The notes under the pieces: model-generated
What the model saw: only the letters and a program-made list of their open reading frames with translations
Databases searched by the model: none
What the model was told of the DNA's origin: nothing
In this document: piece by piece, positions 26,753-42,175 of the stretch
How positions within the stretch are numbered: the stretch's first letter is position 1
Layout of the letters: every line of letters starts with the position of its first letter
Sequence record: KY555144.1
DNA: 64,000 nucleotides
Reading direction: 5' to 3' (one strand)
Program-made: the position numbers and the translations under genes

Positions 26753-28087
26753 CTAGCGAAGGATGGTGAGGGTCTTGGCCGCGCGGGTGATGCCCGTGTA
26801 GAGCCACTTGTCTTCGTCGGCCCGGAAGCAGCCGCTTTCGTCGATCAGGACGACGTCGTCCCACTGCGAGCCCTGGCTGGCGTGGCAGGTGATTGCGTAG
26901 GCCCAGTCGGCGACGATCGAGCTTTTCAGCGCCCGCCAAGCCTTCTGCTCGGGAGCGGTGTAGCCCTTGTTGGTGCGCGAGAAGTGCTCCTCGAACATCC
27001 CCTGGAACATCGTCTTGTCGTGGTACTCGACACCGTTCTCGTCGCTGAACGAGCCCAGGAACGTCGCGTCGCCGTGGGTGAACTCGACCGACTTGAGCGA
27101 GGTCACCTCGGTGCCGTTGGTCAGGTCCGGGTTGTCGCGGACGTTCTTACGGATGATCAGCGGCTCGTTCTTCTGAGGCCCGACGCGTTCGCCGGGATAG
27201 TCGACGTAGCCGAACTCCGAACGCAGTTGCTGATTGACGTTCCAGCGCGTCTTGTTGCGACCCACGATGAACTGCGGGCGGTCCTCGAAGTCGAAGACCT
27301 CCTCGTATTCGGCGCGGCGCATCACTTTGACGCCGCCTCCGTAGTCACGGAACGGCAGGTCCTTGCCCTCGCGCGCCAGGGTCGACAGGTGGATGATCGG
27401 ATTGTCCTTGGCCTGCCGGTGGATTTCCGACAGGAAGAAGTCGGGGTCATTGGCGAGCAGGCCCGCGTCGTCCTCGACCGGCGGAAGCTGCCCCGGATCG
27501 CCCATGGCGAAGATGGGCACCCCGTATTCCATGAGGTCGTCGGTCATCCGGCGCCCGACCATGGACGCCTCGTCGACGACGATCAGGCTCGCCAACTGGA
27601 TGGCGCTGTCGGGGTTCAGTTGGAAGTTGATCTTGTCCTCGCGGTAGGCCGCGCTGAGTTCGGCCTCCAGACGCTTGATCAGCTTCTTTTGCGTGAAGAT
27701 GTGCTGGTCCTTGTCCGGATCGCCGCCTTCCATGGCGCAGATGTAGAGCGCTTCGCTGAGCGCTTCCCGGTGGTTTTCCAGGTCGGTTTCGAGTTGTGAG
27801 ATCGGGGCCGGCTTGGCGCGGTAGATCGCCGAATGGATCGTGCCCGCGTTGGTGTTGGCGTAGCCCTGGGCCTTCAGCTTGGTCCGCATGACCTTGGCGG
27901 CCTTGCCCGTCGGGGCGACGAAGGCCACGGTCTCGGGCGCGATGCCGAGGCTGTCGAGAATGAACGGCAGGATGGTGGACTTGCCCGAGCCGGCGAAGCC
28001 GGTCATCGTCGTCAGGGGTTGCCCGTCCTTGATCTTTTCGACAACGACCTTGCGGGCCGTGTCCTGTTGTGCGCTGAGCGTAGTCAT
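26753..28087 (-). CDS. RecD/Dda-like SF1B helicase
   Basis: GFAGSGKST, APTGKAA, DEASMV, GDPGQLPPV, YAITCHASQGS, LYTGITRA. Confidence 0.9.
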   Translation of the reverse strand: MTTLSAQQDTARKVVVEKIKDGQPLTTMTGFAGSGKSTILPFILDSLGIAPETVAFVAPTGKAAKVMRTKLKAQGYANTNAGTIHSAIYRAKPAPISQLETDLENHREALSEALYICAMEGGDPDKDQHIFTQKKLIKRLEAELSAAYREDKINFQLNPDSAIQLASLIVVDEASMVGRRMTDDLMEYGVPIFAMGDPGQLPPVEDDAGLLANDPDFFLSEIHRQAKDNPIIHLSTLAREGKDLPFRDYGGGVKVMRRAEYEEVFDFEDRPQFIVGRNKTRWNVNQQLRSEFGYVDYPGERVGPQKNEPLIIRKNVRDNPDLTNGTEVTSLKSVEFTHGDATFLGSFSDENGVEYHDKTMFQGMFEEHFSRTNKGYTAPEQKAWRALKSSIVADWAYAITCHASQGSQWDDVVLIDESGCFRADEDKWLYTGITRAAKTLTILR

Positions 28088-38306: not shown

Positions 38307-38997
38307 AGAGAAGCTCCGGTTTGGCGCTGACCGGCTTGGACCAATCCCAGACGTACCAAGCGTAGGCGAAGCGCGGGGCGCCCTTGGTGCCGGCGATCCA
38401 GCGGGGGCGGTGACGAAGGGTGACCTTCGCGGTGAAAGCGGGGTGATCGAACAGGTCCGCGCGCGAGCGCGCCGCGTCCCATTCGTGGCGGCAGAGGAAG
38501 GCCACGAGGCCCTGGTCGGCCTCCATCAGGTCCAGCGCGTGGCGCGCGGCGCGCTCGGCGTCCTTGCCGTAGGGCGGGTTGGTGATGATCGCGTCCGGAC
38601 GCGGCGGCAACGGCGTGCTCTTGCGCTCCTCGCCCTTCTCGTCGACAACCGTCTCGGGCCGGACCTTCAGCGCGCCCAGGCGGTCGAGGTCGGCCGGCGT
38701 CAGCTTGAAGAAGTCCTCGACCGCGTCGACCTCGAAGCCCTCGTAGCGGTGGATGTCCGTGGCGAGGACTTCCTGCACGAAGGGCTTGAGCGGCGTGGCG
38801 ATGGCGCCGTTGCCGGCGAAGGGCTCCCAGGCGAAGAACGGGGCGAAATCATCGCCCAGGGCCTCGATCAGGGCGTCGAAGGCCGGCCGAGGAGTCGGGT
38901 AAAAGTCCAGCGGGGTCCTGGCATATCCGGAGGCGCCCAGCATGGAGGGGTCTTTGCGACCAGCATCGGAGAGAGACATGGTCGTGAGGGATGTCAT
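38296..38997 (-). CDS. Amino (N6-adenine-type) DNA methyltransferase
   Basis: DFYPTP, WEPFAGNGAI (motif I), IITNPPY (motif IV). Confidence 0.82.
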   Translation of the reverse strand: MTSLTTMSLSDAGRKDPSMLGASGYARTPLDFYPTPRPAFDALIEALGDDFAPFFAWEPFAGNGAIATPLKPFVQEVLATDIHRYEGFEVDAVEDFFKLTPADLDRLGALKVRPETVVDEKGEERKSTPLPPRPDAIITNPPYGKDAERAARHALDLMEADQGLVAFLCRHEWDAARSRADLFDHPAFTAKVTLRHRPRWIAGTKGAPRFAYAWYVWDWSKPVSAKPELLYAG

Positions 38998-39054
38998 GGT
39001 TAACGAAGGGTGTCAAGATTCACGACATTGACTGTCGTGACGCAGCACGTTAAT
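38996..39054. promoter_or_regulatory. Divergent promoter region
   Basis: Minus-strand motif at 39012-39027, TTAACCAT at 38996-39003, inverted repeat TCACGACA/TGTCGTGA, and plus-strand TTGACT-N17-TAATCA (-35 at 39028). Confidence 0.65.
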
Positions 39055-39059
39055 CAGGA

Positions 39060-39690
39060 GGCAACGGGCCGTCCTTCTGCATTAGCCCCGCCGCCGCGCC
39101 TTCCAGGCGGCACGGGCCGGGACGGTGGTTGGTGACGAGCAGGCCGAGGCAGCGGCGGGCGAGTCGAAGGAGAACCCGGCGAGCGGCGGAAGGCGTCGTT
39201 GACGCCCTCGGACTCGACAAGCACGTGGTGATGCCGGAAATCACCGCGATCGCGCGGACGTCTGGACGTTGCTAGGCGTAAGGCAGGCCTGCCGAGAAGT
39301 GGAAACGGCCGGGGCGGGCGGGACTTGATCTCGTCCGCCTTTCCGCCTAAGCTTCCCTCATTGCAGGCGCAGCACCGCCCTTCGCTAACGGCCCCGAGGG
39401 GTACGCAAGGGCTAGAAGCCTTGCCTGGGACAGGACTGCCTCTGATCCAGGAACGCCCTGGGCCGCGTAGCGCCCATGACGCGAACGCCGGCCGAGAATG
39501 GGCGACTAGGCGTGACGGCGGCCAGAGGCCGCAGCGACATTCCAAGCTCGATAGAGCGATCGGCGGGCCGGGGCGAAAGCCCTGTTTCGAGAGCCAGGGC
39601 AACCCGTCATAGGTCCTGGTCGGGCGACGAGGCAGCAAGTCCCGCGAACGGAGCCTCTGAGGTGGCGTCACCAAGATGCAGCAGACGCAA
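39060..39690 (+). ncRNA. Candidate ~630-nt highly structured ncRNA, family unknown
   Basis: Own promoter and terminator; no protein-like ORF; 5'/3' closing helix (CTGCAT 39077-39082 with ATGCAG 39676-39681); many local stems and GNRA loops. Confidence 0.6.
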
Positions 39691-39721
39691 AAAGGCCCCG
39701 ATCGCGAGATCGGGGCCTTTT
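39689..39721. terminator. Bidirectional intrinsic terminator
   Basis: AAAAA-GGCCCCGATC-GCGA-GATCGGGGCC-TTTT. Confidence 0.9.
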
Positions 39722-39726
39722 CATGT

Positions 39727-39815
39727 TGGAGCTTCGGGAGGGACTCGAACCCTCATAGGTGTTCCCACCAGCAGAGATTTGCAATCCCGCGCCTAACCTC
39801 TCAGTCCACCGAAGC
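39727..39815 (-). tRNA. tRNA-Cys(GCA) with long variable arm
   Basis: GCTTCGG/CCGAAGC acceptor, U73, encoded CCA, TT-GCA-AA loop, GAGGG-TTCGAGT-CCCTC T-arm, V-arm GGTG-GGAA-CACC. Confidence 0.88.
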
Positions 39816-39862
39816 ACAAAAGGACCTCGACGCCCGAAGGCCCGAGGTCCGATCCGTAACCA

Positions 39863-39990
39863 GGGGAGGGCCGTAGCTGTCCCCTGACCCTGAACGACAG
39901 GTGGCGGGCTTGGTCGTCATCCCGTCAGGCTCGCGGCGCCGCTCGCCTGAACCGCCGATATGCCACGAGGGCAGTGATCCGCAGGTCCCC
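39863..39990 (+). ncRNA. 6S RNA-like molecule
   Basis: Rod with ~20-nt central bubble: GGGGA/TCCCC, CTGTCC/GGGCAG, GGCGGGC/GCTCGCC; GTCCCCTGACC and CCTGAACC resemble recalled 6S motifs; G-U pairs favour the + strand. Confidence 0.5.
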
Positions 39991-39999
39991 ACAAATAGC

Positions 40000-40034
40000 A
40001 AAAAGGCCACGATCCGCGAGGACCGTGGCCTTTT
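40000..40034. terminator. Bidirectional intrinsic terminator between the 6S-like and GOLLD-like RNAs
   Basis: AAAAA-GGCCACG...CGTGGCC-TTTT. Confidence 0.85.
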
Positions 40035-40040
40035 CGTTTT

Positions 40041-40913
40041 CCGATGGGCTGAGACTACACCCATCAGCAATCCCGCTTCGAGGATTATTCCCCAGGTGCG
40101 ACCCCAGGTATTCCCTCGACGTCCACCAGACCCCTTGCGGTAGTCCAGTCCGAGATCATCGCCGCCGTTCTTGCGCACCCCGAAGGGATTGCGGGTCTGG
40201 CGTTTGACCCATCATGGCGAACTACTCGACAGTTCCTTCCCCGCTGGGCTTGCGACCCACTCACCGGCGCTAACCGGCTGACGAAGCTCTTCCTATCGAC
40301 ACCTCGCGGGCTTGCGACCCTTGAGATGACTCCGTTACCCGAAGGCCGGAGCATTTGGCGACTTACGTCCGCCACTGGACCAGTCTTTGCGTTTTTCATC
40401 GAAGCGGGGATTGAACCCGCGACCGACAGCTTAAGAGGCTGTTGCACTACCACTGTGCTATTCGCAAACCCACCAAGACGTGCTGGTCCAGTTGTTCCCA
40501 GAGCTTTTGACCCCGGAAATGCAACACGCCTCATATCTTTCGCCTTGCGGGCTACTCGACTGCTCTTCAGGACTCCGTCTCCCCCAACCTTTCGGCCAGG
40601 ATGCCCAGCACCCCTCGAACTGAAGCAAAGCTCTTCACCGCGAAGTGTCGAACCCTGCAACCCAAACGGTTATCCGTACTCCCTAGACACGCTTGCACGG
40701 GATAGTCCGCTTGCGACGGACTGGCGGTTAAAGCCTCGGAGTTACCCCGGCCCCGCCTTGTCTCCCACGGTCTTCAGGTCTATCCCCTTTTGCAAGAGGC
40801 GGCCAGCTTCCCAGCCCGGACCCGTCGGCTTCCTCTGTCCTCTTGCGAGGTCGGGCGGCCTATGGGAGACCGTCCCTGTCACCCCGTCGCCGGGGCTTTC
40901 GTCAGAAGCGACG
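40041..40913 (-). ncRNA. GOLLD-like giant structured RNA (~870 nt)
   Basis: Promoter TTGACG-N15-GCTAGA upstream and terminator downstream; about ten GCAA tetraloop hairpins plus GAAA/UUCG loops on the minus strand; central tRNA-like domain; segments resembling recalled GOLLD consensus. Confidence 0.6.
40396..40467 (-). tRNA. tRNA-Lys(CTT)-like domain with defective acceptor stem, embedded in the GOLLD-like RNA
   Basis: Good D-arm, ACAGC-CT-CTT-AA-GCTGT anticodon arm, GCGGG-TTCAATC-CCCGC T-arm; only 4 Watson-Crick acceptor pairs and no CCA. Confidence 0.7.
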
Positions 40914-40920
40914 ATGACGT

Positions 40921-41030
40921 TCTAGCGACAGCCCACGTCGTCGTCAACGACTTTTTCCGTCTCGATGTCGAATTTTTTCGACAGTCGTGGATGACGACAG
41001 TGCTTGACATTCTCGTAAGCCCATGCTAGG
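40921..41030. promoter_or_regulatory. Divergent Caulobacter-type sigma70 promoters (GOLLD-like RNA on -, tmRNA on +)
   Basis: Minus: TTGACG (40942-40947)-N15-GCTAGA. Plus: TTGACA (41004-41009)-N15-GCTAGG. Confidence 0.75.
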
Positions 41031-41036
41031 TGTCGG

Positions 41037-41406
41037 AAATCGTTGTAATTCGGACAACGGAACTGGCGGCAAGACAGGGGTGCGAATCCCCTCGCCTCCA
41101 CCATCGACGCCCGGCGCTGGGAGTACGCGACTCCTGGGCAGGGAGTGTTACCCTGGCGGGCTGCGGCCCGAGCCAAAGGTAGCCGGGCGTCGTTGATGGG
41201 GGCGACTAGCTTTCGATTGGCGCTCGGGACTGAAAGACGCAACGGTGGGTGACCTCCACATCGGCTTGCCGGTGATCGGGTCAGGCAACAGTAAATGTCG
41301 CCGACAATGACAACGACGTCGTGGCTTTCGCCTCGGCTCGTGAAGCCATCGCCGCCTAATAAGCGGTAGAGGAGCCCGCCGGGAGCTTGGCAACAGAATC
41401 CCGGCA
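41037..41406 (+). ncRNA. ssrA: Two-piece circularly permuted tmRNA (alphaproteobacterial type)
   Basis: Acceptor piece ends CGCCTCC-A-CCA at 41103; coding piece starts GGGGGCG at 41198, giving a 7-bp stem with G3-U70; tag frame (V)ADNDNDVVAFASAREAIAA followed by two stops (41297-41362); GGCAACAGAA near the 3' end. Confidence 0.9.
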
Positions 41407-41540
41407 ACCCCCTTTCGCAGGCGGGAACACCAACAGGCGATCTGTCGGGCGACCGATTTCCGATCCGTGTTCCCGTCTTCGAAAGGTGGTCAGGCCTACC
41501 CTCTTGGTGTGCTATCCAAGGGTCTGGCCACTTTACAGAA

Positions 41541-41619
41541 CGCGGGGTAGAGGAGTCCGGTTGTCCTCGTCTGGCTCATAACCAGGAGATCGTGGGTTCA
41601 AATCCCACTCCCGCTCCCA
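41541..41619 (+). tRNA. tRNA-Met(CAT), partly initiator-like
   Basis: C1xU72 mismatch, CT-CAT-AA loop, GTGGG-TTCAAAT-CCCAC T-arm, encoded CCA; only two G-C pairs next to the anticodon loop. Confidence 0.85.
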
Positions 41620-41900
41620 ATGCGAACGCCGGCTGTTGAGAACGACGGCGTGACAAGCTCGGAGAGAACGAGCACTCCAGTCCGGGGTATGAGGCCGGAC
41701 TAGCGGACGCCGTAGCGATTGCAGGCGTGACACCCGGAGATAGCGGGACCGGCTTTCCGAGCCGCATGCTCGGCGCGTAAGACCGCAGGCCTCGGCCATC
41801 GGGCAGTGTCAGGGGATGAGGCTAGTCCTCGGCTAACCACCTAGCGGTGAAGCTAGGGCATGCGGTTCGGAAAGCTGGGTTCGCGGTTCGTCCGCTACGA
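41620..41900 (+). ncRNA. Structured RNA domain of unknown class, directly 5' of the permuted tRNA-like element
   Basis: Stems ACGCCG/CGGCGT, GCTCG/CGAGC, AGTCCGG/CCGGACT, CCTAGC/GCTAGG and long-range CCGCATGC/GCATGCGG. Confidence 0.5.
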
Positions 41901-41977
41901 GATGGAGATGTCGCCGGTTCGAGTCCGGCAGGTCCCCCAAAAGGAGGCCTTAGCTCAGTCGGTAGAGCGCTCCTATC
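41901..41977 (+). ncRNA. Circularly permuted tRNA-like element (3' half upstream of 5' half)
   Basis: T-arm and acceptor 3' strand with CCA at 41913-41939, then acceptor 5' strand and D-arm at 41943-41969; acceptor and anticodon stems both pair between the halves. Confidence 0.55.
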
Positions 41978-41985
41978 CCACCTTT

Positions 41986-42070: not shown

Positions 42071-42144
42071 AATCGACGCTTGACCCCAGGCCGCAGGCTG
42101 CTAAGCTTCCCCGGTCGGGATCGTCCCGCGTCCTTTCCAAGGTC

Positions 42145-42175
42145 AAGCCCCCGGAGCTTCGCTTCGGGGGCTTTT
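42145..42175. terminator. Intrinsic terminator closing the tmRNA/tRNA transcript
   Basis: AAGCCCCC...GGGGGCTT-TT. Confidence 0.8.

Follow-up and report, generated by a model that had tools for sequence, protein, structure and literature searches.

The stretch of DNA analysed here (64,000 nt of sequence record KY555144.1, from Caulobacter phage CcrKarma; hereafter the window) contains at positions 39060-39690 a locus that has been read in different ways. GenBank annotates a minus-strand open reading frame (ORF) there (gp130 in Karma, gp128 in phiCbK), several other records leave the locus empty, and a preliminary description made from the letters alone proposed a new large non-coding RNA of ~630 nt. 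Does the locus encode a protein, a single ornate RNA, or several RNA units? We find that the region from the predicted start at promoter P1 to the end of the terminator (39062-39721, + strand) is a genuine non-coding structured RNA that is unclassified, based on covariation, an asymmetry of G·U pairs, its non-coding character and the lack of an Rfam family. The proposed promoter, terminator, most stems and the absence of a protein-like ORF stood up to this analysis, whereas the proposed 5'/3' closing helix proved limited to certain clades and some stems were lost or weakened in relatives; likewise, a non-coding + strand RNA with conserved promoter and terminator was supported, but not a single closed molecule of ~630 nt. 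The most conserved stretch of the locus, 58 nt long, is a copy of a widespread phage RNA module that the preliminary description had missed, and we regard this pseudoknot-hairpin module as a more important result than the locus as a whole.

The 731 bases around the locus are 100% identical to JX100811 and 90-96% identical to phiCbK (95.8%), Ccr10, Swift and Magneto. The Poindextervirus phages Rogue, BL10, RBC8 and RBC63 share ~71% identity with the locus, BL57 matches part of it, and a ~55-nt stretch matches CcrColossus, CcrPW and Brevundimonas phages. The whole RNA is limited to Caulobacter and Brevundimonas phages; the 58-nt module is widespread. The hypothetical protein gp130 (minus strand, 39054-39635/39674) is annotated in GenBank, and its frame stays open over 206-222 codons in Karma, phiCbK and Ccr10. 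However, its GC content by codon position is flat (.69/.68/.68, compared to.67/.50/.885 in the adjoining methylase gene), substitutions between close relatives are equally frequent at second and third codon positions, and 1-nt indels shift the frame between phages that are at least 91% identical. The frame of 222 codons is shortened to 173 codons and, in Poindextervirus and BL57, to at most 118-150, and gp130 matched no Pfam family. With no third-position bias and a broken frame, the earlier statement that the ORFs here are not protein-like was borne out, and a protein product is scarcely conceivable. The protein-gene annotation is wrong and the locus is non-coding, so that a mis-annotated "hypothetical protein" of all phiCbK-like genomes is replaced by a conserved RNA locus.

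RNAalifold analysis of a MAFFT alignment of ten phages, which is not a structural alignment, predicted 146 pairs with 95.8% of cells paired. Changes on both sides were found in 41 pairs compared to 8-13 in slid controls, the covariation score was 0.331 compared to 0.05-0.09 in the controls, and none of 500 shuffles reached the observed values; because the ten sequences represent only three or four clades, these counts overstate the number of independent events. Within the predicted pairs, 189 G·U cells were observed versus 14 A·C cells, an excess that indicates an RNA transcribed from the + strand, in agreement with the orientation of the module and of P1. The z-score of the minimum free energy was unremarkable (-1.46 for the + strand, -0.18 for the - strand) and the stems alone are within chance. 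Thermodynamic stability was therefore rejected as evidence for structure and covariation was relied on instead.

Most of the local stems listed in the preliminary description were recovered in this alignment. GGCGTC/GACGCC (39192-39206) showed two compensatory changes in Ccr10/Swift, within Shapirovirus, and GGTGAT/ATCACC, GCGGCC/GGCCGC and GGGC-GAAA-GCCC were backed by covariation, the GNRA loop of the latter being retained as GCGA. GCTC-GATA-GAGC is conserved but does not covary, GCCCAT/ATGGGC is present but weakened in Swift, and CGAGTC/GACTCG is lost in phiCbK despite its 95.8% identity. The 5' domain (39062-39305, +; helices 2, 3 and 7-11) comprises a number of covarying hairpins, and its CGAGGCAGCG motif (39145-39154) is invariant; the 3' domain (39536-39688, +; helices 23-27) comprises a GNRA hairpin at 39570-39584 and helices around 39588-39661. 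The long-range helices 4-6 drawn by RNAalifold were not trusted: helix 6 conflicts with the covarying local hairpin GGCGUC/GACGCC, and helix 4 competes with a local hairpin found in every clade. A further feature of the alignment is a CGAG(A/G) motif with five conserved, mostly unpaired occurrences at 39145-39154, 39291-39306, 39492-39506, 39588-39600 and 39627-39637 (GCCGAGGCAGCG, GCCGAGAAGUGGAAAC, GGCCGAGAAUGGGCGAC, UUUCGAGAGCCAG and GCGACGAGGCAGC), which may be a tertiary-contact or protein-binding motif.

To which known RNA, if any, does the locus correspond? Rfam 15 returned no family for the locus at the gathering score, nor at E≤10 with permissive filters across 38900-40700. ROOL, OLE, RNase P and GOLLD, the comparisons called for by the preliminary description, were thus all unmatched in the locus, as were group I/II introns, riboswitches and known self-cleaving ribozymes. 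Its phage tRNA-gene setting was confirmed, as the locus lies in an island of transfer RNA (tRNA), transfer-messenger RNA (tmRNA) and GOLLD genes, where ROOL and GOLLD are often found. GOLLD (RF02032) resembles it in being a large ornate phage RNA beside or containing tRNAs, and the only GOLLD match in the window lies 330 nt away (40046-40532, minus strand, 171 bits, with a tRNA-Lys inside). However, the locus matches GOLLD neither in sequence nor in structure, is located on the opposite strand in a separate transcription unit, and is also present in Poindextervirus and Colossusvirus, where GOLLD is missing from this site. ROOL (RF03087) is reportedly ~580 nt long, phage-associated and located near tRNAs. 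The locus is similar to it in size class (~660 nt), phage context and an adjoining tRNA-Cys, a resemblance only: there was no ROOL match at E≤10, and the locus is apparently modular with an internal promoter and has a narrow taxonomic range. No description of the locus or module was found in the searchable literature on phiCbK, Dolichocephalovirinae RNAs and GOLLD in Caulobacter; a catalogue of ~10,000 unnamed viral RNA candidates (PMC10690425) could include either of them.

The locus is flanked by a DNA methylase gene (minus strand) on one side and tRNA-Cys (39727-39815, minus strand) on the other, followed to the right of tRNA-Cys by GOLLD, by a tmRNA of permuted type (41041-41359) and by a pair of tRNA-Met genes. 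The order of the island is conserved in all phiCbK-like phages (Dolichocephalovirinae): array, tRNA-Cys, GOLLD (in some), two-piece tmRNA, tRNA-Met, modules and tRNA-Met. Predicted promoter P1, TTGACT-N17-TAATCA, was present as described, with TTGACT at 39028-39033 and TAATCA at 39051-39056 (39028-39056, +), ~2 nt off the position previously implied. Its -35 element is located in the loop of a perfect palindrome (CACGACA/TGTCGTG), and the surrounding region (38998-39040) is identical in 10/10 phages, in which the -10 element varies (TAATCA, TAGACA, TAGATA, TACACA). A scan for E. coli-type promoters did not call P1. It fits the pattern TTGAyN-N15-nCTAn, which is common to the tmRNA promoter (41004), the GOLLD promoter and a promoter at 42080, and resembles the Caulobacter sigma-73 consensus. 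Many island promoters contain an inverted repeat with the -35 TTGAC at its centre or in its loop and with arms that differ between promoters (e.g. CACGACA-TTGAC-TGTCGTG and CCTTGACAAGG; 39020-39040, 39306-39345 and ~40934-40951 in the window, and L004:2085-2100, L005:2325-2337 and L020:4780-4792 elsewhere). A dimeric regulator might use these repeats as operators, or they could fold into RNA hairpins when transcribed by read-through. At the other end, the terminator hairpin (39689-39721; helix 28, nearly invariant) was present with an A-run and a T-run on its two sides and was called on the minus strand by the scan; it is a predicted bidirectional intrinsic terminator shared with the convergent tRNA-Cys.

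Between these ends, a second promoter-like sequence, P2 (TTGATC-N15-CCTAAGCT; 39325-39353, +), is probably an internal promoter, as judged from conservation of its pattern. The promoter pattern is retained in all three clades with a divergent spacer, its distance to the GCGCAGCAC motif equals that of the unit promoters of CcrPW and of an IMG/VR contig (L020), and CTAAGCTTCCC is common to P2 (at 39346) and the promoter at 42080. The TTGAT of the P2 -35 element is carried in the loop of a long hairpin (39306-39345, +; helix 12) with 16 pairs, 5 of them with double changes.

Downstream of P2 lies a conserved core RNA of ~175 nt ("unit 2"; 39359-39535, +), at the end of which the module is located. 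Searches with nhmmer found this core again in CcrPW (L005:2369-2563, E 2.7e-20), in the IMG/VR contig (L020:4820-5032, E 8e-18) and in Brevundimonas phage Kabachok (L007:2109-2298, E 1e-8). All 17 matches in a metagenome scan for the core were chance matches, so that it is known only from isolates and this one IMG/VR contig. In the core, an invariant GCAGCACC (39369-76) is predicted to pair with an invariant GGACUGC (39433-39), closing a variable middle. The core units of CcrPW and L020 are preceded by a clear TTGACA promoter, the upstream promoter being less clear in Kabachok, and the CcrPW unit follows a genuine protein gene (GC by codon position.69/.41/.69). The interval between the methylase gene and tRNA-Cys contains one unit in Bajun, three in Colossus and Kabachok, four in PW and at least six in L020. 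Array units are ~200-250 nt long, and each ends in the ~58-nt module; the next promoter, or tRNA-Cys, comes within ~6 nt after it. The 3' domain is absent from Colossus, PW and L020, in which tRNA-Cys lies 5-6 nt past the module; it is present only where tRNA-Cys is inverted.

The closing helix (39071-83 with 39675-86), which in the preliminary description joined the ends of the molecule, forms in Karma, in Shapirovirus (9/9, one A>G change giving a G·U pair) and in BL57 (7/9), but is lost in the four Poindextervirus phages tested (~1/9) and is therefore clade-specific. This loss, together with the internal promoter pattern, the autonomy of the core elsewhere and the tandem units of relatives, argues against a single ~630-nt molecule. 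Judged from the sequence, the locus appears to be a composite of promoters and units, and the picture of a single ornate 630-nt RNA is only partly right.

The module at the end of the core (copy 1; 39475-39532, +) consists of an H-type pseudoknot and a hairpin. The pseudoknot helix S1 (39481-82 with 39491-92) is followed by GA (39483-84), S2 (ACGCC 39485-89 with GGCGU 39509-13), GAC (39514-16) and the hairpin P3 (39518-22 with 39528-32, loop CAGAG), all on the + strand. A covariance model of the module, R1, scored copy 1 at 25.9 bits (E 2e-4 over 106 kb, 7e-6 locally). In the 64-kb window R1 found exactly three copies, all on the + strand and all inside the RNA island: copy 2 (41616-41673, 33 bits) starts 1-2 nt past the CCA of tRNA-Met (41541-41619), and copies 2 and 3 (41697-41747, 26.2 bits) lie between the tRNA-Met genes. 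All three have the S1/S2 pseudoknot, the GA...UGAC junctions and the AGAG-type P3 hairpin that characterise the family. The general layout is S1a (2-3 nt), GA, S2a (ACGCC), G, S1b, a loop of 2-20 nt or more, S2b (GGCGU), GAC(A) and a terminal hairpin of 4-6 bp with a GAGAGA or CAGAG loop.

A scan of IMG/VR for the module pattern retrieved at least 120 contigs, compared to no match in shuffled sequence, and nearly all of the matches listed had a perfect yet differing hairpin. R1 found 107 copies in 100 IMG/VR loci, some of them in tandem. Helix S1 was absent from every search pattern; its pair 8:17 was paired in 69 of 73 sequences with six pair types (score 0.765 versus ≤0.27 when slid). P3 covaries at all five pairs, and S2 is never broken, with compensatory ACGUC:GACGU and ACGAC:GUCGU variants and a CACC:GGUG variant family. 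Rfam returned no family at E≤1 in 14 module-bearing loci, nor at E≤10 for the two tRNA-Met modules alone. A compact, strongly covarying element that is common in uncultivated phage genomes is thus absent from Rfam. In the scan of the genome collection, about half of the loci among the matches listed passed a loose hairpin filter and were mostly chance-like, and ~7-8 of those listed had a convincing GAGAGA hairpin. In other uncultivated phages, non-coding stretches of 300-400 nt hold 2-4 tandem modules at intervals of 70-130 nt (L024:8480-8900, L117:700-1100, L046:2950-3420(-), L112:2300-2614(-)), with a second sequence family among them, GCGACACCUGC ... GUGGUGUGAC-N-stem-GAGAGA-stem, in which S2 is CACC:GGUG.

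The module is always in sense orientation relative to flanking genes and marks the boundaries of tRNAs, other stable RNAs and highly expressed genes. Among 18 IMG/VR matches whose nearest tRNA is on the module strand, that tRNA is 5-18 nt away in 10 and at most 300 nt away in 16. S1a begins 1-6 nt after tRNA 3' ends. In contigs without tRNAs the module is found in short intergenic gaps, often 7-50 nt past a stop codon; the upstream gene encodes the major head protein in 4/9 cases tested and RecT, an exonuclease or a terminase in others, and the next start codon follows at a median of ~27 nt. Isolated phages of Cronobacter, E. coli (mEp390), Pseudomonas, Stenotrophomonas and cyanobacteria carry related half-modules (UGAC-A-GCCGG-GARAGA-CCGGC) in their intergenic DNA. 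In mEp390 (L284), two module-like elements are located in the ~780-nt early-left leader after the repressor gene (27192-27972, -), one of them inside the annotated 80-codon gp36; an N-like antiterminator gene is not annotated in the operon.

We compared the module with known RNAs of similar distribution. Theta ribozymes, minimal ribozymes of the hepatitis delta virus (HDV)-like type, are found directly 3' of phage tRNAs and as isolated sense copies in non-coding DNA (PMC10879173), a distribution pattern which the module shares; it does not share their fold. Inspection of 73-107 aligned modules argued against an HDV-like or theta identity, as the strand order P1-P2-P3-P1-P4-P2 does not fit: S1 closes over S2a and the gap from S1b to S2b is as short as 4 nt, and ribozyme helices P2 and P3 would need room there. 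In addition, the module has no G·U at a ribozyme P1 base and matches no HDV family of Rfam. In concept, the module can be likened to HK022 put (PMC9378689), a phage RNA of ~60-75 nt that acts in cis, has two structured parts and works without any phage protein, and the half-modules in the PL leader of a Hendrixvirinae phage provide a likeness in context. However, put consists of two irregular stems with a short triple helix (PMC9378689) and the module is an H-type pseudoknot, and homology to put was rejected because the HK022 put sites yielded no R1 match. The ncRNAs associated with UG27 reverse transcriptases form phage tandem arrays of ~150-nt units, each with a hairpin and a pseudoknot (bioRxiv 10.64898/2026.09.22.753630). 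In contrast, the present units vary in sequence except for the terminal module and are located in a tRNA/tmRNA island; neither a reverse transcriptase nor any other partner protein turned up within the arrays or next to them.

With moderate confidence, we read these data as a modular stable-RNA locus that heads the island and in which the module serves as cis-acting punctuation of RNA ends. Host RNA polymerase would start at the predicted Caulobacter-type P1, and probably also at P2, and stop at the bidirectional terminator, so that host-type early promoters would produce a stable structured RNA at the head of the island. This predicted product is modular and highly structured, with the 5' domain, the conserved core and the 3' domain, and the Karma locus represents the Shapirovirus version of a lineage-specific array of variable copy number. 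Acting in cis on its own transcript, by cleaving itself like a theta ribozyme or by either guiding or blocking a universal RNase, the module would define or protect RNA ends and the primary transcript would thereby mature into discrete stable RNAs. Such a role is suggested by the position of the module tight against tRNA ends, at the 3' end of units and after capsid genes. The link with tRNAs, tmRNA and GOLLD suggests possible functions of the mature RNAs in translation, RNA metabolism or counter-defence. More tentatively, the module might constitute a new widespread class of cis-acting phage RNA, either a self-cleaving ribozyme or a punctuation or antitermination signal needing only universal host machinery, and the Karma transcript and the units of its relatives a new family of stable RNAs matured by it.

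Several observations weigh against such a modular, punctuated locus. The long-range helices drawn by RNAalifold, including helices 4-6, would link its parts into one fold, a 4-bp helix (39073-76/39659-62) is retained in 10/10 phages, and the closing helix holds in two clades (Shapirovirus, BL57). P2 could be a chance promoter look-alike within a structural hairpin, many modules precede a start codon by ~15-35 nt, a position also compatible with a role in translation or transcription, and known self-cleaving ribozymes were rejected as the identity of the module owing to mismatched topology and the lack of an Rfam match, which bears on the self-cleavage variant. The 4-bp helix and the closing helix equally support one ~650-nt ornate RNA, running from P1 to the terminator in a single 5'/3'-closed fold of the ROOL or GOLLD kind, e.g. 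multimeric, with the module as a mere domain. A strong conserved promoter and one terminator bracketing the locus, its size and its tRNA/GOLLD neighbourhood are in line with this. However, Poindextervirus lacks the closing helix and the 4-bp helix is so short that it may be due to chance, the core is autonomous elsewhere, the 3' domain is missing where tRNA-Cys is not inverted, the internal promoter pattern is conserved and neither ROOL nor GOLLD is matched, which renders one closed RNA doubtful. It is very improbable that conservation acts on the DNA, as a promoter/operator cluster or a replication or packaging site: palindromes around the -35 TTGAC of several island promoters and the 100% conserved promoter region would fit, but the G·U excess over A·C, the covariation of the pseudoknot and the strict sense orientation all favour RNA.

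For the module itself, the main alternative is a put-like modifier of RNA polymerase that would counteract pausing and Rho-dependent or intrinsic termination across untranslated stable-RNA and late operons, the Karma RNA being mainly its carrier. Consistent with this, copies recur every ~220-250 nt on one strand in the untranslated 1-4 kb arrays that run into tRNA-Cys, tmRNA and tRNA-Met (Colossus, PW, L020), half-modules are found in the mEp390 early-left leader and, in Cronobacter phage CS01, ~40 nt past a promoter, and a universal partner such as RNA polymerase would account for the spread across phage types. We nevertheless consider it unlikely, because R1 has no match at the HK022 put sites, modules are not preceded by sigma-70-type promoters more often than the control (3 versus 2), and the Karma module is followed 150 nt on by a strong terminator, which must work because the convergent tRNA lies beyond it. 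Whether RNA-end punctuation, as we favour, or polymerase modification applies, the placement of the module at the ends of tRNAs and behind capsid genes suggests that phages have a general means of setting RNA boundaries or sustaining transcription.

Beyond the locus, the stable-RNA island of the model Caulobacter phages is densely packed, has for the most part not been annotated and is experimentally open in a well-developed laboratory host. GOLLD (40046-40532, -, 171 bits) probably extends to ~40915, with a promoter at ~40951-40920 (-) and a terminator at 40036-39999 (-), and is unannotated in GenBank except for its inner tRNA. The latter is tRNA-Lys(CTT) in Karma, Swift and Magneto, and its place is taken by tRNA-Gly(TCC) in phiCbK, Ccr10 and BL57. 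Poindextervirus, Colossusvirus, Bajun and L020 have no GOLLD at this site. The tmRNA is of the two-piece (permuted) alphaproteobacterial type (41011-41450, +) and is preceded by a TTGACA promoter of its own (41004); the Karma record does not annotate it, and it was found in all relatives examined. The second tRNA-Met has no preceding promoter-like site and therefore probably relies on read-through across two modules. The 230 nt from the third module to this tRNA-Met (41750-41985, +) are structured-looking and contain tRNA-like pieces, one T-arm-like (GCCGGTTCGAGTCCGGC, ~41913-41929) and one D-arm-like (TAGCTCAGTCGGTAGAGC, ~41951-41968); ARAGORN called no tRNA in 41750-41985. Further downstream, a promoter-like TTGACC-N15-GCTAAGCT is followed ~60 nt on by an intrinsic terminator (42149-42175), and this segment (42080-42175, +) may, from its sequence, be a small RNA gene. 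The ~170 nt from tRNA-Cys to the GOLLD terminator (39822-39995) are unannotated and include a terminator-like hairpin on the minus strand (39843-39822).

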